Sequence record: MT135025.1
Direction: 5' to 3' (one strand)
Length of the DNA: 64,000 nt
How positions within the stretch are numbered: position 1 is the first letter of the stretch; each line of letters starts with the position of its first letter. The notes beneath the pieces are model-generated. The model was not told the DNA's origin. It ran no database searches and saw only the letters and a program-made list of their open reading frames with translations. The translations under genes and the position numbers were made by a program. Shown one piece after another: positions 4,375 to 59,401 of the stretch.

Positions 4375-5094
4375 ATGAAAAAATTAATCGCAATCGTAGC
4401 ACTAGCAGCATCTGTAGCAATGACTGGCTGTACTGACACCATTGACAATTCAGCAACTGATCAGCTAAAAGCAGCTATGCCAGTTCTTTCTCAAACTGAA
4501 AAAGACATGCTGAACGTATTCGCTGCTCCGAACTTCTTGAGCCGTTACGACAACATGTATGCAGAAGTTGTCAAGAATCGCGTACACTTCGGTCAGAAGC
4601 CGATCCCTCGTGCCGATACAGAAGTTCCTTTCTGTGATGTAATCGACGCTGTAATCGCAGCAGAGCGCGAAAACAATCTAACAGAACGTGATTACTCACT
4701 GAGTAATCAATGGAAGATGAAATACGGCATCACACTTCTTGAGCAATGTAATCAATCAGACCGTGCTCGTATTGAAATGCAGATCGCTAAAGCAAAAGCC
4801 GATGCTGAAGCAGCTAAAGATCGCGTAATCATCGAAGAACAAGAATTCAGCAAGAAAGAAATCAAAGCTGAGAAAATCATCGAAGACACCGTTGTAATCA
4901 AAGATGATGTGCTACTATCACCTGAACTTGTTCGTGAACTACGTGGCTCAGTTAAAGACTGTAATCGCGCTAAAGTCAAGCTAATGAGTGTAGTTGATGC
5001 TGGTGAGCAGCTAACTACAAAGCACTACGACGAAGTTAAAGGTCTAGTTCTACAGTGTGAAATGTTGAAACTAGAAGTCGAACTCAACAAATAA
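4375..5094 (+). CDS. Lipoprotein
   Basis: Signal peptide with lipobox-like VAMTGC. Confidence 0.75.
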   Translation: MKKLIAIVALAASVAMTGCTDTIDNSATDQLKAAMPVLSQTEKDMLNVFAAPNFLSRYDNMYAEVVKNRVHFGQKPIPRADTEVPFCDVIDAVIAAERENNLTERDYSLSNQWKMKYGITLLEQCNQSDRARIEMQIAKAKADAEAAKDRVIIEEQEFSKKEIKAEKIIEDTVVIKDDVLLSPELVRELRGSVKDCNRAKVKLMSVVDAGEQLTTKHYDEVKGLVLQCEMLKLEVELNK

Positions 5095-6462: not shown

Positions 6463-7460
6463 AAGCCCCAGAGTTCTTTCCAATGTGTTTTAGCATCTTG
6501 TCGATACTTCTCAATGTCAAATTTTTGATATTTCTGTTCGATTGCATCATCAATGACGCGGATCAACGTATCATTGTTTATATCAGCACGAATCACTGGG
6601 AAAATAAAATCCCTTGTGTAAGGTGCGTCATGCTGAACAATACAAGGTATGTACTGACATGCTTCTAATAACGCATATGGCATAATCTCGATTCTAGACA
6701 TATGAAGCAAAACTTTACTTTTCATCATATGTGCTATGACTCGCTCACGCCGCTGACAAGTTTCGACTATACAATCAACACCATTCGGGATTCTTATTGA
6801 TTCGGTTGTGAATAGACGAATTTTAAGACCGCTGTATGCAAGCGCGTTTAGCATTTCGGGTATCTGCTTACGTTTGTATGCACCTGACACGATAATCACG
6901 TCAGACTCTTCAGCAGCGTCAATATCAGCTTGTGATATGGACGGAAGCTCAAAAGGTTCAAATGCAGTCACATGTTTGCCACCGATTACTTCTCGACCCC
7001 ATTGTGCAATCCCGTTCGATTGAGCAATGTTAGTGACTAATGACGTTGACATCATGTGTCGCCATTGAGGTAAGTTGTAAATTTGATGAATGTCCATGTA
7101 TTCGCGATATGAATCTGGTACTATCAAGTCACCGAAATGATGTTGGTTGTAACAACGGCGCTTCGCTTCGATACATGCGCGGAGTGCTTCATATGAATGC
7201 GTATAGATAATCGCTTCGCTATCAATCGCGTTGATAACCATTGCGTTTGCCTTGTAGTCTTTATAAGACCGTTTCGTTAAAATGAAGTCACACCCGAAAT
7301 CCCATTTACTCACGTGTGGACACGATTCGTCTCCGAGTACAATAACTTTGACATCACAGTTTAGTGATTGCATTAAACGAACGTGATCTTGAATGAATGT
7401 GTAAATACCGCCGCCAATTCCCAACATAAAGTCAGTTACTACGTAGCGAACTTTTTTCAT
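6459..7460 (-). CDS. GT-B fold glycosyltransferase (family 1/4-like)
   Basis: N-terminal GGG loop; EIMPYALLEA acceptor-side signature. Confidence 0.7.
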   Translation of the reverse strand: MKKVRYVVTDFMLGIGGGIYTFIQDHVRLMQSLNCDVKVIVLGDESCPHVSKWDFGCDFILTKRSYKDYKANAMVINAIDSEAIIYTHSYEALRACIEAKRRCYNQHHFGDLIVPDSYREYMDIHQIYNLPQWRHMMSTSLVTNIAQSNGIAQWGREVIGGKHVTAFEPFELPSISQADIDAAEESDVIIVSGAYKRKQIPEMLNALAYSGLKIRLFTTESIRIPNGVDCIVETCQRRERVIAHMMKSKVLLHMSRIEIMPYALLEACQYIPCIVQHDAPYTRDFIFPVIRADINNDTLIRVIDDAIEQKYQKFDIEKYRQDAKTHWKELWGL

Positions 7461-7529
7461 AAAAAGTGTTGACTCCTACTGTGTTTGTCTGTAGACTAAT
7501 TGTATCTCAAGCAGAATGGGAATTAAACA

Positions 7530-7736
7530 ATGCGACTATTATCTCAAGACTTAGTTCGCTTGCGTGTAGAAGAGCTACCGTTCGTGAATTTAAGTGTTGA
7601 AACGCAGATCAAAATATGCGATTATCTCAACACTCTAGATGATGAGACTATTTACTCGCTTGAGAAGCATACTGAGACACCGCAAGGTGCAAGAAAACTA
7701 TTAAACTTTCTATTAAAGAAGATTGGAGACACATAA
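7530..7736 (+). CDS. Hypothetical protein
   Basis: TTGACT...TAGACT promoter and RBS upstream. Confidence 0.65.
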   Translation: MRLLSQDLVRLRVEELPFVNLSVETQIKICDYLNTLDDETIYSLEKHTETPQGARKLLNFLLKKIGDT

Positions 7737-29401: not shown

Positions 29402-29932
29402 CTATTTGCGCCCCTTACGATTTGCCTTATTTGCTTTTCTTTTTGCTCTACGCAATTCTTTGCGTTTTGCGATTTTGTCTGCACGTCTAACTGCATCATA
29501 ATCCGCAGCACACGACGCAGCAAACGCATCAGGCTTGAAAACGGGTTCTTGACCCACGTATCCCAAGATAGTGCCCTTAGCTTCGTTATACGCAACGTGT
29601 GAACGATGGGATGGGTCTGGGTTGATGTCAACGTGAACTTCAAACCCACGAGTACCACACATTGGCTTAACACGCAGGGCGGTTTCACCTGCTTTATAGA
29701 CTTCATTCATCAAACGACTACGAATACCATCTTTACAAGACATGTACGCTGGTTCAGTTTCGATAGATTTGAATACTTGAGCGCCTTTACTACCCTCAAG
29801 GTGAATGATGATTACAGTAGCGTAACTAATCATATCACTCTTACGCTTGCTATCACACCCAACATAAATCGTACTGTTCGGATGACTGTTATTGATAGCT
29901 GTTTCAATTGCTTCCCAATCGAACATTTTCAC
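29402..29932 (-). CDS. RNase H-like YkuK-family protein
   Basis: IYVGCDS, RLMNEV, EVHVDIN, KPDAFAASCAAD. Confidence 0.8.
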   Translation of the reverse strand: MKMFDWEAIETAINNSHPNSTIYVGCDSKRKSDMISYATVIIIHLEGSKGAQVFKSIETEPAYMSCKDGIRSRLMNEVYKAGETALRVKPMCGTRGFEVHVDINPDPSHRSHVAYNEAKGTILGYVGQEPVFKPDAFAASCAADYDAVRRADKIAKRKELRRAKRKANKANRKGRK

Positions 29933-29976: not shown

Positions 29977-31413
29977 TTAAAAGCTGTAGCGATCAACGCC
30001 TACAGTTTTCAGCATGATCTTGACTGGCTCAAGCTCACCACCCAACAATGAAGTCAGGATAGATGGGCTACAACCCGATACCAGTGCAGTACCCGCTTCG
30101 CCAGCTTTAACCGGAACGTTGCCAAGACGACCACGAATGTTCCAGAAGACTAGTTGTGGCATTTCATAGCCAGCACGTGCGTACATAGCTTTGATTGCGT
30201 CGAAGTTTGCACGTTCGCCGCGACCATACCAGCCGCCACCAGTGTTTGCTTGGTCGAATTCCATGTCGCTCATGATAAGCAACTTGGTTGGCATTTCTTC
30301 TTGTGAAAGATTTGCACGTTTCGCACGCTCTAACAGAACGTTAAAGCATTTACCGATGTTTGTGCTCATGTCTTCACCTGAGCGATTCATGTTGTCAAGA
30401 CGCTCTTTTAGTGAGCTACCGCGCAACTGGTGGAAGTGCGGATCGCTTGAGAACGAAATGAACTGATCTTTGAAGATGCCTTCATTGCGTTCAGCAACAT
30501 AGATGCCAAGAGACATTGCAACTTGCTTACAAGTCACACCCGAACGATCTGTACCTGCGTTGATTGGCGTGCTCATAGAGCCAGATACGTCAACAACAGG
30601 GATGATGCGCTCATCAGAGCCTTCCATGTAGTTCGGCAGAGCTTTCCATTGCTCGTTCGCTACAGACGCATTGCCATGACTAACGCTCTTAACGACATCA
30701 TATGGGAACAATGCACCAGCGTTGATCTTCGCTTCACCTTTTTGAAGTGACTCGATGTAGCTTGTGTAACGAGCAGAAGCGTTACGACCGAATGCTTGTT
30801 GATAACGAGCAGACGCTACAGATGGCAACTTACCAAAGTCGATTGCATCCCATTCTTGAGCACACATCTTCTGTTCAACAGTGTCAGACAAAAGTGCTAG
30901 AATCTTACGCCACTGCTTCGCAGTTACACCAAGAGACTTGATTGTGCGCTTGAACACATGACCGTTTTTGCTGTTTTCACGTGGGAACCACTTAGCAGCA
31001 AGACCGTTCTTGTCGTTTACAATCGCGTTTGACCACAATGTGATCGCGTCTTTCTCAAGACTTGTACCGAACGCAGAAATCAAGTCGTCGAAACGACCTA
31101 GTTCTGGAATTTTCGACATTACAGCACGAGCTACGTCAGGCTGCTCATTACAAAGTTTAGTGAATAGAGTACGGAAAGTACCACGTTCACCCGCACCACC
31201 GCGAACATCACGAGACCATAAAAGAATGCGTGTCGCTAGTTCGGGGTTTTCTGCAAACGCACGACCGAACAGTGTTTTAGACTGATCGTTACCACGCATA
31301 GCAGCAATACCGAAGAACAAGTTTAGACACTCGTTACCTGAAGTGCTGTGAGTAACTGCACCGTTTGCTGTACGTGAATCGTTTGATTGCATAGCGTTCA
31401 TAAATGCTGACAT
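29977..31413 (-). CDS. Ro60/TROVE-like DUF2828 protein with C-terminal vWA domain
   Basis: RTANGA..STSGNECLNLF, RDVRGGAGER, GRFDDL, AKWFPRE, VVDVSGSM, SDMEFD, VFWN. Confidence 0.85.
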   Translation of the reverse strand: MSAFMNAMQSNDSRTANGAVTHSTSGNECLNLFFGIAAMRGNDQSKTLFGRAFAENPELATRILLWSRDVRGGAGERGTFRTLFTKLCNEQPDVARAVMSKIPELGRFDDLISAFGTSLEKDAITLWSNAIVNDKNGLAAKWFPRENSKNGHVFKRTIKSLGVTAKQWRKILALLSDTVEQKMCAQEWDAIDFGKLPSVASARYQQAFGRNASARYTSYIESLQKGEAKINAGALFPYDVVKSVSHGNASVANEQWKALPNYMEGSDERIIPVVDVSGSMSTPINAGTDRSGVTCKQVAMSLGIYVAERNEGIFKDQFISFSSDPHFHQLRGSSLKERLDNMNRSGEDMSTNIGKCFNVLLERAKRANLSQEEMPTKLLIMSDMEFDQANTGGGWYGRGERANFDAIKAMYARAGYEMPQLVFWNIRGRLGNVPVKAGEAGTALVSGCSPSILTSLLGGELEPVKIMLKTVGVDRYSF

Positions 31414-31448
31414 TGTTTATTCCTCATATTAAATTGCTGTAAAATGTC
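31409..31448 (-). promoter_or_regulatory. Translation-initiation hairpin of the Ro-like gene carrying the CAGCAA motif
   Basis: RNA GACAUU UUA CAGCAA uuuaauau GAGGA auaaac AAUGUC; helix includes the AUG, SD lies in the loop. Confidence 0.7.
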
Positions 31449-31462
31449 GTTTTGATGTGATG

Positions 31463-31491
31463 ATTATACACGGATTTGAACCCGTGTAAAC
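31463..31491 (-). promoter_or_regulatory. T4-like early promoter for the Ro-like gene
   Basis: GTTTAC-N17-TATAAT. Confidence 0.75.
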
Positions 31492-32151: not shown

Positions 32152-32518
32152 CAATATATTCCTTAATCGGCTTAGAAAAGTGACGAATACAAGAACTGTC
32201 AAGTCGTTTACGACCATCACCATCTATATCAGGTAGTGTGTATTCGTCATTAAACGGCTGACCGCTTTCTTTCGCAATCTCATAGGCATCGGCTCGATTG
32301 AAGTATTCACCACAATAGTTGATAAACCCCTGACCGCGATCCCCGAGTTCGTTTCGATGTTCATATGTACAACCTAGTTCTTTCAATAACTTAAAGACTG
32401 ATTGCATGTTTCGACCGAAATGGCAGCTATCAGCAACAACAATGTCGCGCACTTCACCGTTCGGTAGTGTCACTCGAATTGCATTAGCAGCAGACGATAT
32501 TACATTGACGTGCGACAT
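32144..32518 (-). CDS. Conserved phage hypothetical protein
   Basis: QGFIN..GEYFNR.DAY.IA...GQ pattern. Confidence 0.75.
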   Translation of the reverse strand: MSHVNVISSAANAIRVTLPNGEVRDIVVADSCHFGRNMQSVFKLLKELGCTYEHRNELGDRGQGFINYCGEYFNRADAYEIAKESGQPFNDEYTLPDIDGDGRKRLDSSCIRHFSKPIKEYIDG

Positions 32519-32856
32519 GTATCGTACCTCATAAAAATTGAACCAACGCGCTTATACTGTCCAGAGTGAGAAAGCAACCGAGCCATTTTACTATGACCAA
32601 CGGGATTGCTTGTCACTAGAACAACAGTGCGCGGAAAATTACGATGATCAATCGCATGAGAGAGAATATCATACCCCTCTCTACCAACATCATCACCTAG
32701 GTCATTATCCATGAATAGAGTGATGTCAGTTAGATTTGTGTGCTTGACGAAATTCATACCGTATTCGAATGTACGAAGAACTAGCTTTTCATCGTCGCGT
32801 ACGTAATCTGACGTGAACTTATTAATATCACGCAGATCATCAATCATAACGTACAT
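32500..32856 (-). CDS. Cyclic-phosphate-processing receiver-domain protein
   Basis: IDDLR, DNDLG, GYD, TSNPVG motifs. Confidence 0.75.
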   Translation of the reverse strand: MYVMIDDLRDINKFTSDYVRDDEKLVLRTFEYGMNFVKHTNLTDITLFMDNDLGDDVGREGYDILSHAIDHRNFPRTVVLVTSNPVGHSKMARLLSHSGQYKRVGSIFMRYDTCRTSM

Positions 32857-34530: not shown

Positions 34531-34557
34531 ACAAAAAAACCTGCTCAAGGCAGGTTC
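34531..34557 (-). terminator. Terminator closing the RNA cluster
   Basis: aacctgc-cttga-gcagg + T8 on the minus strand. Confidence 0.75.
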
Positions 34558-34563
34558 TAATGT

Positions 34564-34824
34564 GCAATACACAGACATTCGAGAAGTGTTTTATCGTCTT
34601 TGCTTAAATCTCAATTGACTATCTCGATGTTTCTCATCGAGAAAATACCCATGATTCGGCATGAGACCTATTTCGTTTTACAGTACGAACACCGTCTTAA
34701 TGGTCATTTCCTACCACGAGAATGCGACAGGCTCACGTCATCACTGAGAAAGCAGCTAGTGCGCCTCATTACTATTAAAGTTTGCTTCTTTGATTAGTAA
34801 TATTGCTGTACAATGTCTTATTGC
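34564..34824 (-). ncRNA. Large structured RNA L1 (261 nt) with terminal helix + CAGCAA
   Basis: 5' GCAAUA-AGACAUU pairs with 3' AAUGUCU-UAUUGC; core shared with L2. Confidence 0.7.
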
Positions 34825-34829
34825 GAATT

Positions 34830-34918
34830 TGGCGGAGATACTGGGAATCGAACCCAGAGAACGCTATTAACGTCCGACACCTTAGCAGGGTGCTGTCATA
34901 CCTTTAGACCATATCTCC
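34830..34918 (-). tRNA. tRNA-Ser(GCU)
   Basis: Cloverleaf with long variable arm, CCA. Confidence 0.92.
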
Positions 34919-34923
34919 GTAGA

Positions 34924-35103
34924 TCATTTCTTACCACGCTCTGCTTTGCTAATCTCGACAGCAGCGATTTGCGCGTTGGCTTCTTTCTCAGTGTCATGAG
35001 TACCAAGTACTCGACCTTTAGATGAAAGAGCAACCCATTTGTCGCCACGCTTCTCGACTTTCTCAACAAGCTTGTGGTATTCATCAAACGTTTTAAGTTT
35101 CAT
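34924..35103 (-). CDS. 59-aa putative internal head protein (missed by ORF track)
   Basis: TATAAATA late promoter, GAGG RBS, MKLKTFDEYHKLVE...GDKW...LGTHDTEKEANAQ. Confidence 0.75.
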   Translation of the reverse strand: MKLKTFDEYHKLVEKVEKRGDKWVALSSKGRVLGTHDTEKEANAQIAAVEISKAERGKK

Positions 35104-35154
35104 TTGTCATCCCTCAGTTAGTTTATTGTATTTATAACTGAACGACTTTTAAAC

Positions 35155-35355
35155 AGTGGCATGCTGCTCTCATGCTCAGACACATATTTGCTCTTATTGC
35201 AGGCGTGTGCCACGCGCAGCGCAGATCCCTTTTGATAATTTAATGACCAGCGGGACTCTTAGCAGGTCTTACACATAGCCTTTCAGCTATATCTTCTTTT
35301 AAGACCATAGTGTCGTACGGTCTAATCACTCTCTTTCGATTCGCGTTGCTAAGTG
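35155..35355 (-). ncRNA. Unidentified multi-hairpin RNA
   Basis: Non-coding; hairpins at 35159-35175, 35275-35290, 35302-35323. Confidence 0.45.
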
Positions 35356-35359
35356 AATT

Positions 35360-35436
35360 TGGTGCCCAACCCGAGATTCGAACTCGGATCATCTAGTGTT
35401 TGAAACTAGCGCCTCTGCCAATTGGACTAGTTGGGC
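35360..35436 (-). tRNA. tRNA-Leu(CAA)
   Basis: Cloverleaf, CCA. Confidence 0.92.
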
Positions 35437-35439
35437 TTG

Positions 35440-35550
35440 AATGAGCTGCCGCAACTCTTTAATCCCTAACGCCTGTCAGCTTTCGCCCGGCTGAGACCGT
35501 TTTCAACGGCGGTAGTCTAGCTTCGTGTAGAACGCGGCTTATGCTAGAGT
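35440..35550 (-). ncRNA. Unidentified GC-rich structured RNA
   Basis: GCCGC/GCGGC closure; CCGUU-GAA-AACGG and UCAGC..GCUGA hairpins. Confidence 0.45.
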
Positions 35551-35551
35551 T

Positions 35552-35628
35552 TGGTACGCACGGGCGGATTCGAACCGCCATCCCTGAGATTTTAAGCCTC
35601 ATGCCTCTGCCAATTGGACCACGTGCGC
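35552..35628 (-). tRNA. tRNA-Leu(UAA)
   Basis: Cloverleaf, CCA. Confidence 0.92.
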
Positions 35629-35630
35629 AG

Positions 35631-35704
35631 TGGAGCCCGAACAGAGAATCGAACTCTGACCGCGGGATTTGCAATCCCTCATACTTCCATTATACGATTC
35701 GGGC
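35631..35704 (-). tRNA. tRNA-Cys(GCA)
   Basis: Cloverleaf, CCA. Confidence 0.9.
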
Positions 35705-35712
35705 AATTTGTT

Positions 35713-35806
35713 AGTGCATTGCATGGACTACTGGCGATCTTAATGGGTATCTCAAGCATTCAGAATTCCCATGCGCTACTACAATGCTTTTTTCGCTAAA
35801 TGCACT
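35713..35806 (-). ncRNA. Unidentified RNA with 8-bp terminal stem
   Basis: AGUGCAUU/AAUGCACU termini; inner AUGGG/CCCAU. Confidence 0.4.
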
Positions 35807-35807
35807 T

Positions 35808-35884
35808 TGGGGTGACAGACGGGGATCGAACCCGCATCTTCCGGAATCACAACCCGGGGGTATTTCCACTTCACCCACTGCCAC
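35808..35884 (-). tRNA. tRNA-His(GUG)
   Basis: Cloverleaf, C discriminator, CCA. Confidence 0.88.
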
Positions 35885-35938
35885 ACCAAAGTACACTTTG
35901 GGATGTTTACGACATCAAACGAATGCGCTCCCTGTGCA

Positions 35939-36178
35939 TTAATCAGTTTTCTTTAAGTAGATACTATCAGGCGATAGCTCTCTCGTAAACATATTTTTGA
36001 AATAAATTTCGATGTCATCAGAAGTTGTTGAAGACTCAATTTCAAGAGCACGTTCTAAAATCTTACCGCGTTTATAACCAGCGCGCCAACAGTCAAACAT
36101 AAGTCTGTCCATGCGTTTCAGTTTTTCAATTTGGTTTTGATTTACGTATTCGTGAGTTTCAAGTAATACAGGCGTCAT
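35939..36178 (-). CDS. Hypothetical protein
   Basis: GAGAAA RBS. Confidence 0.7.
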   Translation of the reverse strand: MTPVLLETHEYVNQNQIEKLKRMDRLMFDCWRAGYKRGKILERALEIESSTTSDDIEIYFKNMFTRELSPDSIYLKKTD

Positions 36179-36201
36179 AATTTATTTCTCATCATAAAGA
36201 A

Positions 36202-36275
36202 TGGTAGTCCCTAGTGGAATCGAGCCACTTCTTTCTCTGTGTAAAAGAGACGTACTGCCATTATACTAAGGGACC
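36202..36275 (-). tRNA. tRNA-Val(UAC)
   Basis: Cloverleaf; T loop CUCGAUU variant. Confidence 0.85.
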
Positions 36276-36280
36276 AAAAT

Positions 36281-36354
36281 TGGAGCGGGTACACGGACTC
36301 GAACCGAGACGAACGACTTGGAAGGACGTCATGCTACCATTACATCATACCCGC
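36281..36354 (-). tRNA. tRNA-Gly(UCC)
   Basis: Cloverleaf, CCA. Confidence 0.88.
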
Positions 36355-36358
36355 ATTG

Positions 36359-36516
36359 TTAATCTGAAGCGTCGAACAAATCACGTATTGCACGCAGATT
36401 CGTAAGCTCTACAGTAAGTGTTCTTATAAAGAACGGGTTGGTCTCTTTCGCGAGACGATTTTCAACACAGCGAATCTTATCGCGTATGTTGCCCTTGCTT
36501 AGTGTAAAGTAGTCAT
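36359..36516 (-). pseudogene. Small gene with an apparent 1-nt frameshift
   Basis: GAGGA RBS + ATG gives MTTLH*; the open frame SKGNIRDKIR... continues in a shifted frame. Confidence 0.4.
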
Positions 36517-36541
36517 GCTTCTTATCCTCTTTGCTTGAATT

Positions 36542-36617
36542 TGGTGGAGACACCGATACTCGAAATCGGATCTAATGGCTTATGAGACCATTGCTCTACC
36601 ACTTGAGCTACATCTCC
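36542..36617 (-). tRNA. tRNA-Met(CAU)
   Basis: Cloverleaf, CCA. Confidence 0.88.
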
Positions 36618-36621
36618 AAAA

Positions 36622-36840
36622 GTAGTAATTAACTCATTTAATCGCACACGGGCTGACACCATATATTCATGGTCTGAGCGAGGAACCACATAGTGGGTAC
36701 TATTACCTCATCTTAGTTTTGATTGTTTTACATGACGATAACTAGAAACGTTCATAATAATGCCACGCGATACTTCCTGTATCACGGCTAACTGAGTTAG
36801 CATATCGTGCCTTTCGGCTGTAGTGTCGTTTCCGACGAAT
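36622..36840 (-). ncRNA. Unidentified multi-hairpin RNA region
   Basis: Hairpins GUCG-GAAA-CGAC, GCC-GAAA-GGC, GCUAAC-UCA-GUUAGC, GAUAC-AGGAA-GUAUC, ACCAU..AUGGU. Confidence 0.45.
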
Positions 36841-36847
36841 TAAGTAC

Positions 36848-37061
36848 AGACAATACCGAAGTGTTTTTTCGTCTTTAACATGAATCGGAGTTGACTATCT
36901 TGTTGCTTCTCAACAAGCAAATATCGTCTGTTTCAGCGACGCGCCTATCTGACTATTTCTAGGCAGAGAGAATCTTTCCTTTCAAGCTGCACCGAAGCAC
37001 TGCCCAGGTTAAGATCATTACCATTTTTAGTAAGATTTTAATTTGTTGCTGTATATTGTCT
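36848..37061 (-). ncRNA. Large structured RNA L2 (214 nt), paralogue of L1
   Basis: AGACAAUA/UAUUGUCU termini + CAGCAA; shared core with compensatory changes. Confidence 0.7.
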
Positions 37062-37668: not shown

Positions 37669-37674
37669 GTTACT

Positions 37675-37787
37675 GAGTGTTATTACTTGCGTCGTCCAGA
37701 CCAGAGATACCAACTCTGAAAGGGAATCGAACCCCAAACATTTCTTTTCGTAAGAAGAATATTAGTAATTGTTTGCTGAAAACACTC
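37675..37787 (-). ncRNA. YrlA-like Y RNA (permuted tRNA mimic)
   Basis: Order: terminal stem + CAGCAA, T arm (GUUCGAUU), loop-closed acceptor CAGAG/CUCUG, D arm GUC-UGGAC-GAC, 3' strand. Confidence 0.75.
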
Positions 37788-37796
37788 TTCGGTATT

Positions 37797-38189: not shown

Positions 38190-38260
38190 AATTAAACAGC
38201 AATCCTTTTCTCTTTTTCCAAATAAAAGTTTTGTATTGTTTGCTGAAAGATTGCTTAATT
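38190..38260 (-). ncRNA. Minimal Y-like RNA Y2
   Basis: AGCAAUC/GAUUGCU stem + UUU CAGCAA; shares UUCAGCAAACAAU with the YrlA-like RNA. Confidence 0.6.
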
Positions 38261-38869: not shown

Positions 38870-38879
38870 ATTATTCAAC

Positions 38880-38963
38880 AGCTTGCGTTCTTTGGTCTGT
38901 TTATCGCTGTCTGAGTACTCGTCTAGCGATCAATAGATTAAGTTGAATTGCAGTATGCAAGCT
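38880..38963 (-). ncRNA. Minimal Y-like RNA Y3
   Basis: AGCUUGC/GCAAGCU stem + AUA CUGCAA; inner AUCGCU/AGCGAU helix. Confidence 0.6.
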
Positions 38964-39520: not shown

Positions 39521-39545
39521 ATTAAATTTTGTAAACTTCTTTTCT

Positions 39546-39576
39546 TCATTGTACATGATGTTTATATCGTTGTAAA
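39546..39576 (-). promoter_or_regulatory. T4-like early promoter within the RNA cluster
   Basis: GTTTAC-N18-TACAAT. Confidence 0.6.
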
Positions 39577-39739
39577 CATCTTTTTGAAATATTTTGAAGA
39601 ACTTAACGTTTTCATTTCTATGTGTTAATATTAACACTCACTCAAGACATCTTAAACACTAATTTGTGAAAAAGTTCGTTAAATTCTATCATCACGACAG
39701 TACTTAACGAGATACGGTCCTAAGCGTATCATATAAATT

Positions 39740-39863
39740 CAGAATGGTGAGACTTGAACTCACTTCGAGTAATAGCGTAAACTAACAGTTGTTGCCAGAG
39801 GCTATCAATTATTCTCTACCGAGTATGTTGCAACTCTGCATTTCCCCATTTCTAGGCATTCTG
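39740..39863 (-). ncRNA. tRNA-body chimera C1 (expanded anticodon arm, no CCA)
   Basis: CAGAAUG/CAUUCUG acceptor, GUGAG-UUCAAGU-CUCAC T arm, insert with AGAG/CUCU then GGCAAC. Confidence 0.6.
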
Positions 39864-39868
39864 AAATA

Positions 39869-40112: not shown

Positions 40113-40187
40113 TTTGTTCTTTAACTTTGTTTATCATACTCTGCATTCAAAGTACGTTAAACAAAATTTTTTGATTTCCTTCGCCCA

Positions 40188-40213
40188 TAAAAAAGGACGC
40201 TACGTGCGTCCTC
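40188..40213 (-). terminator. Terminator
   Basis: aggacgc-acgta-gcgtcct + T6 on the minus strand. Confidence 0.75.
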
Positions 40214-40481
40214 AAGTATACTTCTATGTTATACTATTGGACTACGTTTGTGGAGACCACTCTTGTTTCGCACACGGATTCGCTAGATACACGAATTCTG
40301 AGCGCAGAAAATCGCTGCGTAAAATCATATCAGAATGTGTATTCGAATGTGTCATGGAAACTCTCTAAACGTTAAAATAAAAATGTTTTTGTTTGTATAA
40401 TAGTACTTATAACACCAATTTTGACGATTTGCGGTATTTTCGCAGAAAATTGAAAAAAAAATTCAACTTTCTGCGATTTTC

Positions 40482-40715
40482 TTATCGACCTAGGTGTTTT
40501 CGCTTGTTCATTTCAACAAGAATTTCATCGTTGTAATGGCGGTTCAGTTCAACATACTTCTTGTGTTGATCTGAAGTCAACTCGTTAGTGTCATTCAGAT
40601 GCTTCAAGAACCCAAGAGGTTTGCGAAACGACTTGCGATATTCGTTCAGACGCTCGTCCGTTAGATTATGCAGTTGTTTCGGAGTCAGTAAAGTTTTATT
40701 GATGTCAAAACTCAT
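40482..40715 (-). CDS. Hypothetical protein
   Basis: GAGGT RBS before MSFDINK. Confidence 0.7.
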   Translation of the reverse strand: MSFDINKTLLTPKQLHNLTDERLNEYRKSFRKPLGFLKHLNDTNELTSDQHKKYVELNRHYNDEILVEMNKRKHLGR

Positions 40716-40740
40716 GTTGTACCTCACTTGTTATTAAAAT

Positions 40741-40856
40741 TGGTAGTCGGGGCTGGATTCGAACCAGCGACCACGTGCTTAACAGGCAATTGAAGGAGTG
40801 CTGGAGCGATACTTGTCAGTATCATTCTTCGTGCTCTACCACTGAGCTACCCGACT
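40741..40856 (-). ncRNA. tRNA-Asn(GUU) body with a 41-nt insert in the anticodon stem (C2)
   Basis: Removing the insert gives CGUGC-CUGUUAA-GCACG; insert has GAUACU-GACA-AGUAUC + CAGCAC. Confidence 0.8.
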
Positions 40857-42409: not shown

Positions 42410-42533
42410 TGGTGGAGAGTGATGGATTTGAACCACCGACCAAAAGATTTACCTAGTTATTAAGGTTTGCAGCATGAATGCTTGTCAGTATTCTTTAACA
42501 TTCTTTTGCTCTACCAGACTGAGCTAACTCTCC
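42410..42533 (-). ncRNA. tRNA-body chimera C3 (anticodon loop replaced by motif domain, CCA present)
   Basis: AAAGA/UCUUU stem encloses GAAU-ACUGACAAGC-AUUC + AUG CUGCAA. Confidence 0.75.
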
Positions 42534-42543
42534 AGAATTTGAG

Positions 42544-42654
42544 GGTGAAGTACAGGACTCGAACCTGCGACCTCCGGCGTGCAATACATGCAGCATGAAA
42601 TCTTAACAGATTTCTTTTTAGGCCGGCATTCTAACCAACTGAACTAACTTCACC
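42544..42654 (-). ncRNA. tRNA-Asp-like body chimera C4
   Basis: CCGGC/GCCGG stem encloses GAAAUCU-GUUA-AGAUUUC + AUG CUGCAU. Confidence 0.75.
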
Positions 42655-42664
42655 AATGTAAAAA

Positions 42665-42802
42665 CATATAGTTGCGGGTGTAGGATTCGAACCTACATCA
42701 CGATCTTATGAATGATATGCGAAATTGGTTGCCGTACAGATTCTTATCAGAATCAGTTTTGTGCTACGTGTGCTACCACTTACACCAACCCGCAACTATA
42801 TG
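42665..42802 (-). ncRNA. tRNA-body chimera C5 (CAU loop retained, extended acceptor stem)
   Basis: Insert GAUUCU-GAUA-AGAAUC + UGUA CGGCAA; ~15-bp terminal helix, no CCA. Confidence 0.75.
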
Positions 42803-43048: not shown

Positions 43049-43195
43049 GAGAGTACATTGGTCGAGTGTAACGGAATCGAACCGTTCCCACGATCTCCCT
43101 ATGATATGCGTAAATTGGTTGCTGAATATAATCATGTCTGATTACAGTATGCTACGTGTGCTGCCACTACACCAACACTCGACCAATATACTCTC
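43049..43195 (-). ncRNA. tRNA-body chimera C6 (paralogue of C5, extended acceptor stem)
   Basis: Insert UAAUC..GAUUA + UUCAGCAACCAAUUU; ~20-bp terminal helix. Confidence 0.75.
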
Positions 43196-59142: not shown

Positions 59143-59401
59143 ACTTCGTGTAAAGAAATTGCAAGATAAAGTTCTCAACGCGCGAATGGAAATGCAAGCT
59201 GCGGAAGAATCTTTGCAGTACGCGCGCGCAATGGAAGACGGTCAAACCATTAATTTAGGTTCTGCAATTGGTAGCTTTGACATGTCTAAAGAACAGCTTG
59301 TTGCAGCAGCTGAGAAGACTTACAAGGAAAAGAAAGGTTGTTATAACGTAATGTGTAACGGTGTTGATAGTTTCCTAACTGGTATGGGGATTGAATTATA
59401 A
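59126..59401 (+). CDS. Hypothetical protein
   Basis: GAGG RBS before MATLTEL. Confidence 0.75.
   Translation: MATLTELRVKKLQDKVLNARMEMQAAEESLQYARAMEDGQTINLGSAIGSFDMSKEQLVAAAEKTYKEKKGCYNVMCNGVDSFLTGMGIEL

Follow-up and report, generated by a model that had tools for sequence, protein, structure and literature searches.

Two described systems come closest to a pair of large structured RNAs, here termed L1 and L2, that are encoded in a 64,000-nucleotide (nt) stretch of phage DNA from sequence record MT135025.1 (the window, in what follows). The first comprises the Ro60 proteins and their Y RNAs: in these systems several Y RNAs are typically encoded beside the protein gene, each with a stem that joins the 5′ end to the 3′ end and a loop with the contact motif GNCGAA or CGAA, and some possess tRNA-like bodies (PMC4201824, PMC12135203). 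RNA repair has been described as a context of phage Ro/TROVE proteins, and some of the systems are found in RNA-repair operons (PMC7824862). The second comprises the Class I RNAs of Dictyostelia (Aspegren 2004, Avesson 2011, Kjellin 2021; PMC7919456), which are defined by a 6-bp end-joining stem with compensatory changes, a motif adjoining its 5′ strand, an AAG start, a CUGU end and a variable remainder, and of which none was found outside Dictyostelia in one of these studies (PMC7919456). Four proteins were pulled down with a Class I RNA (DdR-21), among them the uncharacterised DDB_G0281243 (bioRxiv 10.1101/2020.04.05.026054). On the basis of score, length and motif, L1 and L2 fail formal membership in both the YrlA type of Y RNA and Class I, yet they share the terminal stem-and-motif element, or handle, of the latter and the overall architecture of the former. 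Within a widespread family of phage RNAs whose genes are linked to that of a Ro60-like protein, they represent the members with long inserts, and it appears moderately probable from these patterns that they are Y-RNA-like ligands of a divergent phage Ro60, with which they would form Ro/Y-type particles.

Vibrio phage V07 matches the window at 100% identity and KVP40 (Schizotequatrovirus) at 99%, over 2.8 kb. The window contains 28 tRNA genes, all on the minus strand between 34.8 and 42 kb; the KVP40 RefSeq record has no annotation over the stretch of either L1 or L2 (Table 1). The RNA sense of both is assigned to the minus strand because of the strand of the tRNA genes, the conserved G-U pairs and the terminator that follows L1. 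An earlier reading of the letters without database searches (the sequence-only reading) had placed L1 at 34564-34824 and L2 at 36848-37061; these boundaries were off by a few bases and have been revised to those of the table. Its account of the likeness between the two RNAs was borne out: the plus-strand 19-mer gaagtgtttt(a/t)tcgtcttt is identical at 18 of 19 positions and ttgactatct at 10 of 10, the minus-strand 7-bp hairpins CUCGAUG-AGAAA-CAUCGAG (L1) and CUUGUUG-AGAAG-CAACAAG (L2) differ by two compensatory pairs (C-G to U-A and A-U to U-A), and in both RNAs a terminal helix (AGACAUU/AAUGUCU in L1, AGACAAU/AUUGUCU in L2) is followed by ACAGCAA. The remaining sequence statements were likewise correct on re-checking, excepting the description of a GUUCG hairpin in L1 as T-loop-like. 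The hairpin itself is real and shows covariation in phage nt-1; since its 6-nt loop, GUUCGU, has no equivalent of A58, it does not qualify as a canonical T-loop. Neither RNA contains a credible open reading frame (ORF), the only candidates being a 65-residue TTG-initiated frame that runs antisense and a second frame overlapping a tRNA.

Table 1. Positions in the window of the RNAs, the Ro-like protein gene and associated features
Feature	Position	Strand	Remarks
RNaseH_like (PF04308) protein	29402-29932	minus	Directly downstream of the Ro-like gene; Pfam
Ro-like protein, DUF2828 + DUF7788 (KVP40.0300)	29977-31413	minus	478 amino acids; Pfam; PHROG 850; annotated 'RNA-binding protein'
Operator-like motif copy	31407-31449	minus	Translation initiation region of the Ro-like gene; R1 match at 31403-31451, 21.7 bits, E 0.0069
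cREC_REC (cyclic-phosphate processing receiver) protein	32500-32856	minus	Upstream of the Ro-like gene; Pfam
Intrinsic terminator	34536-34558	minus	Directly 3′ of L1; kept in relatives in the L1 alignment
L1	34571-34819	minus	About 249 nt; final gene of the tRNA transcript, directly after tRNA-Ser(gct)
L2	36846-37061	minus	About 216 nt; paralogous to L1; flanked by tRNA-Arg(tct) and tRNA-Met
S3	37673-37788	minus	115 nt; fills the gap from tRNA-Gln to tRNA-Thr; relaxed scan
S1	38197-38255	minus	58 nt, minimal member: AGCAAUC-UU-UCAGCAAAC...A-rich...GAUUGCU-G; descriptor match
S2	38879-38963	minus	About 85 nt: AGCUUGC-AU-ACUGCAA...hairpin...AAAGAAC-GCAAGCU-G; between tRNA-Tyr and tRNA-Met

BLAST searches recover one L1-type and one L2-type copy, in syntenic positions, from each of ten KVP40-like phages, with nucleotide identities that fall to about 70%. 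The check proposed in the sequence-only reading, namely covariation across related phages, was carried out with these searches and with alignments, and compensatory changes were found in the helices. In an alignment of 17 L1 and L2 sequences the terminal helix is 100% paired and three of its seven pairs have changed on both sides (variants AGACAAU/AUUGUCU, AGACAUU/AAUGUCU, AGAUAAU/AUUAUCU and AGGCAAU/AUUGCCU), while six of the seven pairs of the 7-bp hairpin have done so. The covariation score of this alignment is 0.208 as against 0.101 in shuffled versions, none of 500 of which reaches the observed value. For the L2 family taken by itself, RNAalifold predicts 45 pairs, 15 of them with compensatory changes. 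The invariant columns belong mainly to the handle (A-G and U.U.C.GCAA on the 5′ side, U..C-U-G on the 3′ side). The layout of L1 is AAG-ACAUU-GU-ACAGCAA ... AUAGUCAA..GAUU..AAAGACGAUAAAACAC ... AAUGU-CUGU; L2 begins with (G)AG-ACAAU-AU-ACAGCAA, continues through a GNRA hairpin, a 4-bp hairpin and the 7-bp hairpin to AUAGUCAA..GAUU..AAAGACGAAAAAACAC, and ends with AUUGU-CUGU. Neither RNA matched any Rfam family at gathering or permissive thresholds, even at E<=10. L1 and L2 are genuine, conserved, structured non-coding RNAs. Two further helices were considered and set aside: a pairing of GUACAG with a 3′ CUGUAC tail is contradicted by non-compensatory changes in phages F86 and 1081O, and a AAAGACGAA...UUCG hairpin is unsupported in the L1 copies of the F86 group. 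The deposited records of phages D482, F86 and K566 (loci L003, L005 and L009) place many 'hypothetical proteins' of 30-40 residues over the tRNAs and the cores of L1 and L2; these are probably gene-calling artefacts.

The candidate protein partner is encoded on the same strand, downstream of the tRNA cluster. Searches of the PDB with its sequence gave designed armadillo repeats only, and a fold search was therefore needed. In an AlphaFold2 model of the 478-residue protein (mean predicted local distance difference test score, pLDDT, 78; predicted template modelling score 0.74), helical repeats occupy residues 28-258 and a vWA α/β domain residues 270-470, with an invariant D-x-S-G-S motif (DVSGS) at residues 275-279. 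Foldseek comparison with the PDB returned only three full-length matches, all of them to the TROVE/Ro60 protein of Thermus phage phiLo (9kop, 9l5y); these were the top three (E 1e-6 to 5e-6; template modelling score, TM, 0.49-0.58 over about 515 columns), and all other matches were confined to the vWA domain. The predicted model thus displays the features of the Ro60/TROVE proteins, namely a ring of HEAT repeats and a C-terminal vWA domain with a MIDAS site, and the protein is accordingly predicted to fold like Ro60. Mycobacteriophage homologues with the same Pfam families carry the annotation 'Ro-like RNA binding protein'. The gene is present in 710 cultured-phage records and has relatives in thousands of metagenomic contigs; among the matches listed, the relatives are all phage or metagenome proteins.

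The genomic tie between the RNAs and this gene emerges from phages outside the KVP40 group. In 80 IMG/VR loci fetched for a marine relative of the Ro-like protein (54% identical), one to three RNAs come after nearly every gene, encoded in the same orientation and ahead of a terminator; they consist of a short stem strand, NU-[A/U]CAGCAA, a variable stretch, the complementary strand and Y-G. Three size classes are represented among these marine RNAs: short (45-62 nt), medium (127-176 nt) and long (181-257 nt). A descriptor drawn up exclusively from RNAs just after DUF2828 genes in IMG/VR contigs, with no KVP40-type sequences (6-bp stem, N, U, [AUG]C[ACU]GCAA, stem complement, Y, G), gave 91 matches in the 49 kb that lie within 650 nt downstream of 79 genes, with 70 of the 79 loci represented, and seven in the remaining 880 kb; this amounts to 1.86 as against 0.008 matches per kb, a 230-fold enrichment. 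Members of the family are found in T4-like phages of marine origin and in FelixO1, Listeria, Campylobacter and Mycobacterium phages. The gene is flanked by four such RNAs in FelixO1 (among the first tRNAs), three in Listeria phage LMTA-148, two in Campylobacter phage F352 and three in Mycobacterium phage Lumos. The fourth FelixO1 RNA (7422-7546) and the middle Lumos RNA (4498-4625) have T and D arms, through which the latter matches the Rfam YrlA model locally with 39.3 bits (E 2e-7), a value below the gathering score. Invariant across the family are the terminal stem, which has 6-7 bp and is free in sequence, the adjoining NU-ACAGCAA, a 3′ strand rich in A, an (A)AG start and a CUG(U) end.

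A search in the reverse direction used a covariance model, R1, built only from L1 and L2. In 314 kb of non-KVP40 phage loci its best matches are gene-adjacent RNAs, with rough E-values of 0.0075, 0.0092, 0.053 and 0.19 in FelixO1, 0.022 in marine locus L063 and 0.09 in L033. In the window it retrieves S1 (28.9 bits, E 2.4e-4) and S3 (E 0.13), and scores 165 bits for L1, which belongs to its training set. Beyond the handle, L1/L2 and the marine RNAs have in common only short strings, AAAGACGAAAAAAC and UAGUC(A/G)A among them. The marine RNAs have no Rfam match at E<=0.1, hidden Markov models (HMMs) of the L1/L2 3′ core found KVP40-type copies only, and an exact scan of IMG/VR for the 3′-core pattern found KVP40 and VH7D only. 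Homology of the bodies of L1/L2 and the long marine RNAs is unproven, and the family link therefore rests on the handle. In locus L013, which encodes a protein 60% identical to the one in the window, no convincing family member was found; this metagenomic T4-like contig has a 1-kb non-coding stretch (818-1886) with several T-arm-bearing tRNA-like sequences uncalled by ARAGORN, one of which starts AGAGUGAUUACAGCAAAC. In Listeria phage LMTA-148 (L100), a near-threshold match to the ROOL RNA (90 bits, gathering score 99.1) at 1463-2014 precedes the Ro-like gene and its three motif RNAs by about 1 kb, and RtcB ligase genes are found 1.3 kb downstream.

In the window itself the descriptor matches L1 (34572-34817), L2, S1, S2 and one antisense site, with 1.3 matches expected. 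The stem of S1, which is conserved in relatives, covaries among them (GCAAUC/GAUUGC, GUAAUC/GAUUAC, GAAUGU/GCAUUC), and S2 is kept in KVP40, nt-1, ValKK3, pp2 and VH1. S3 combines the terminal stem and UCAGCAA with an insert that forms a tRNA-like module, comprising a true T-arm (GGGGUUCGAUUCCCU) and a D-like arm (CAGAGUUGGUAUCUCUG), in a YrlA-like architecture; it is conserved in eight phages with covariation in both arms. Hence the 'unrecognised ncRNA class' of the sequence-only reading stands as far as two paralogous, structured non-coding RNAs without an Rfam match are concerned, but not as a stand-alone pair, there being at least three more members in the window. The antisense site (59176-59227, minus strand) is GC-rich, lies opposite a 150-residue ORF and is probably a chance match. 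The minus-strand stretches 42413-42533, 42544-42653, about 42670-42793, about 43060-43180 and 40744-40856 are tRNA-shaped, 110-124 nt long and labelled 'tRNA-Pseudo' in KVP40. They have a long insert at the anticodon position, which in two of them is a hairpin with UUCAGCAACCAAUUU or ACGGCAACCAAUUU, the same CAGCAA motif, and they look like circularly permuted relatives of S3 and YrlA. The Rfam YrlA model matches weakly at 42475-42596 (30.4 bits), and R1 at 42603-42746 (E 0.051) and 43068-43136 (E 1.9).

A further copy of the motif overlaps the start codon of the Ro-like gene. This operator-like element reads GACAUU-UU-ACAGCAA-UUUAAUAUGAGGAAUAAAC-AAUGUC-AG; its loop contains the Shine-Dalgarno sequence GAGGA, the 3′ strand of its stem includes the start codon AUG (31413-31411), and its stem is identical in sequence to that of L1. 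It is kept in seven loci, namely those of KVP40, pp2, nt-1, 1081O, F86 and K566 and the metagenomic locus L014, whose protein is 58% identical. On the simplest reading, the Ro-like protein would recognise the module and repress its own translation, and the start-codon copy so understood would support the module as the ligand of the protein. A sigma-70-like promoter (TTTACA-16 nt-TATAAT, 31455-31485, minus strand) lies just upstream of the element and is conserved in relatives. Translational operators are familiar from T4-type phages, where RegA, gp32 and gp43 provide instances of autoregulation. As in those cases, an RNA-binding protein would here recognise a mimic of its ligand on its own mRNA, overlapping the start codon; the protein family and the RNA motif are different, and the present operator is a prediction from sequence.

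Placed beside the YrlA-type Y RNAs (RF02553; Chen 2014) and Yrl1/Yrl2 of phiLo, the phage RNAs show several likenesses: they are found, several per genome, near a gene that resembles Ro60 by predicted fold, the stem joining their ends borders a large loop in which a short motif is conserved at the position that in Y RNAs is the protein-contact site, their bodies are modular, with a tRNA mimic in S3, FelixO1 7422-7546 and Lumos 4498-4625, and they share an RNA-repair context. They differ in that the phage protein belongs to a DUF2828/DUF7788 lineage outside Pfam TROVE. L1 and L2 themselves lack the tRNA-like domain of YrlA, having no YrlA match at E<=10 and the loop GUUCGU, whereas S3 possesses it. 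As regards proximity, L1 and L2 lie 3.1 and 5.4 kb from a gene whose product is Ro60-like by fold only, while in other phages family members abut the gene.

The resemblance to the Class I RNAs (RF01414) centres on the handle. The stem of L1 and L2 is 100% paired with three covarying pairs, and S1 displays three stem variants. The ends are uAAG...CUGU in L1 and S1 and gAG...CUGU in L2. The 11-nt Class I motif, (C)CUUACAGCAA, is partly matched by GU-ACAGCAA in L1 and AU-ACAGCAA in L2, at 8 of 11 positions and with a spacer one base shorter; within it U.C.GCAA is invariant in the 17 L1/L2 sequences. Further, the RF01414 consensus, GaUcuC-CUUACAGCAAU...GagAuC-UG, corresponds to the descriptor, the phage form being N6-NU-ACAGCAA. 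The Rfam model aligns end-to-end (1-56 of 56) with S1 at 27.4 bits, against a gathering score of 41.5, and likewise end-to-end with DUF2828-adjacent RNAs of loci L064 (28.8 bits), L024 (25.4), L100 (23.1) and L084 (22.8), all of which remain below that score. A variable A/U-rich remainder, several paralogues per genome and, among the phage RNAs, short members of 45-68 nt add to the likeness. The differences concern size, origin and partner. Class I RNAs measure 42-65 nt and score at least 41.5 bits, whereas L1 (about 249 nt) and L2 (about 216 nt) are unmatched, having inserts of 150-200 nt, and S1 has 58 nt and 27.4 bits. Class I genes are found in dictyostelids with a Dictyostelium upstream sequence element (DUSE) promoter about 60 nt upstream; the phage genes lie inside a tRNA operon, and their RNAs would be processed from polycistronic transcripts where those of Class I arise from DUSE promoters. 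Finally, the known direct binder of Class I RNAs is Rnp1A, an RNA recognition motif (RRM) protein.

Since the handle reproduces both the Class I signature and the stem-and-motif layout of the Y RNAs, the RNAs are of a kind already known. The 'protein-binding or catalytic core' of the sequence-only reading accordingly retains its first half: protein binding is best supported, there is no sign of catalysis, and the part of the core that is conserved across the family is the terminal stem with ACAGCAA. A more far-reaching and distinctly tentative possibility is that the stem and ACAGCAA constitute an ancient recognition element of a DUF2828 branch of the Ro60 superfamily, with the Class I RNAs as eukaryotic counterparts of the phage RNAs, in effect the 'Y RNAs' of a DUF2828-type protein, L1 and L2 as versions with a large effector domain grafted into the loop, and the module serving also as the operator of the protein's own mRNA. 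The DUF2828 protein family is found in phages, bacteria and eukaryotes, and no earlier link between DUF2828 (PF11443), DDB_G0281243 and the motif string was found in the literature.

Two neighbours of the Ro-like gene bear on the potential function of such particles. The RNaseH_like gene also lies beside it in loci L013 and L014, and the cREC_REC gene is again present in L014; the cREC domain has been predicted to belong to RNA repair (PMC7824862, PMC9503650). Expression, processing, binding, autoregulation and a repair role, as we infer them, could be combined as follows. L1 and L2 would be stable RNAs cut from the long phage tRNA transcript, each with a constant handle, in which a 6-7 bp end-joining stem with AAG and CUGU flanks opens into an internal loop whose 5′ strand bears NU-ACAGCAA and whose 3′ strand is rich in A. 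A large variable body would be inserted into the loop of this handle, specific to L1 and L2, tRNA-like in S3 and absent in S1. The handle is the proposed binding site of the Ro60-like DUF2828/DUF7788 protein, whose ring might handle damaged or misfolded RNA while the RNA body recruits or gates other factors, candidates being the neighbouring RNaseH-like and cREC enzymes, RNA ligase and host exonucleases. The likely purpose would be tRNA quality control or repair during infection. By also binding the handle copy over its own start codon, the protein may limit its own synthesis.

Several observations weigh against L1 and L2 being ligands of a phage Ro60. Pfam calls only DUF2828 and DUF7788 in the protein and does not call TROVE, Ro60 is found neither by phmmer nor by a profile search of the PDB, and the kinship is visible at the fold level only, with the TM scores of 0.49-0.58 and pLDDT of 78 given above. 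In the KVP40-type phages L1 and L2, though on the same strand, do not adjoin the protein gene, lying 3.1 and 5.4 kb upstream of it. Beyond KVP40-type phages R1 scores only modestly (18-25 bits). L1 and L2 are missed by HMMs of the long marine RNAs, and the marine RNAs by those of the L1/L2 core; sequence HMMs thus provide no link between the bodies, which leaves the handle and short strings like AAAGACGAAAAAAC as the connection. Lastly, the canonical Ro-binding motif GNCGAA/CGAA is absent, its place being taken by ACAGCAA.

L1 and L2 might instead be functional structured RNAs independent of the Ro-like protein, with the handle as a signal for processing or stability in excision from the tRNA precursor (for instance for RNase E, RNase III or RNase P), or decoys for host anticodon nucleases or other defence nucleases. 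L1 and L2 are embedded among tRNAs on one transcript, cleavage sites could be marked by AAG at the conserved start and CUGU at the conserved end, several kb separate them from the protein gene in KVP40-type phages, and T4 has two stable RNAs of unassigned function at the same place in its tRNA cluster. Such independence nevertheless seems unlikely, in that about 90% of the other loci have the RNAs beside the DUF2828 gene regardless of tRNAs (L016 and L017 are tRNA-free over 21 kb), no family member is seen in the 10-kb T4 locus that was examined, from which the gene is missing, and a processing signal leaves the handle copy at the start codon unexplained. The T4 RNAs in question, rnaC and rnaD (species 1 and 2), resemble L1 in that they are stable, unexplained and encoded distally in a tRNA cluster of T4 type, in a position syntenic with that of L1; they differ in their length of 119-139 nt and the absence of the terminal-stem-plus-ACAGCAA signature. 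Homology with them was rejected, as neither the descriptor nor R1 matches them and there is no similarity in sequence or structure.

A ribozyme or other self-acting RNA is highly improbable: the size of 215-250 nt, the several conserved helices with conserved single-stranded strings and the possible pseudoknots in the medium-sized marine forms would suit one, but no Rfam ribozyme family matched at E<=10, the minimal members (45-60 nt) consist of a stem and an unstructured loop only, and the bodies are freely exchangeable (tRNA-like, L-type or none). Least probable of all are small-protein genes or elements that act as DNA, whether miniature mobile elements or remnants of homing endonucleases bounded by terminal inverted repeats. 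The terminal repeats do resemble the ends of miniature inverted-repeat transposable elements, genes for HNH and other homing endonucleases are dispersed through these tRNA clusters, and some annotators call tiny ORFs over the RNAs. Against this, the positions are syntenic in all relatives, the stems differ between copies in one genome with pairing kept, the G-U pairs would be unpaired if the other strand were the RNA, and indels break the reading frame, with no conserved ORF.

Other parts of the tRNA cluster are also conserved and unannotated. The minus-strand stretch 36618-36846, 230 nt between L2 and tRNA-Met, is 91-93% conserved in ValKK3 and nt-1 and partly so in F86; it has neither the family motif nor an ORF and may be a further structured RNA. 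Comparable minus-strand gaps lie at 35105-35359, 39521-39868 and 40113-40743, and the conservation of the second extends to phage 1081O (77%).

If they are Y-RNA-like partners of such a protein, five or more RNAs that lack annotation in KVP40 and its relatives would gain an identity and a testable candidate partner, and much of the 'empty' space in KVP40-type tRNA clusters would thereby be explained. With a simple signature, candidate partner RNAs are found beside DUF2828 or 'Ro-like' genes in four cultured phages and, among metagenomic viral loci, in 70 of 79. Among the RNAs that flank the gene in the cultured phages, the Rfam YrlA model gave a single sub-threshold match, to the Lumos RNA with the tRNA-like body. 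Phage Ro particles would thus be open to simple binding and genetic experiments in laboratory hosts, for which the motif copy at the start codon is a ready-made binding reporter. More broadly, these observations suggest that a whole Ro60-like branch may use a different handle, with ACAGCAA instead of CGAA, and for the Class I RNAs of Dictyostelium, a puzzle in molecular function since 2004, they may offer a first mechanistic lead.

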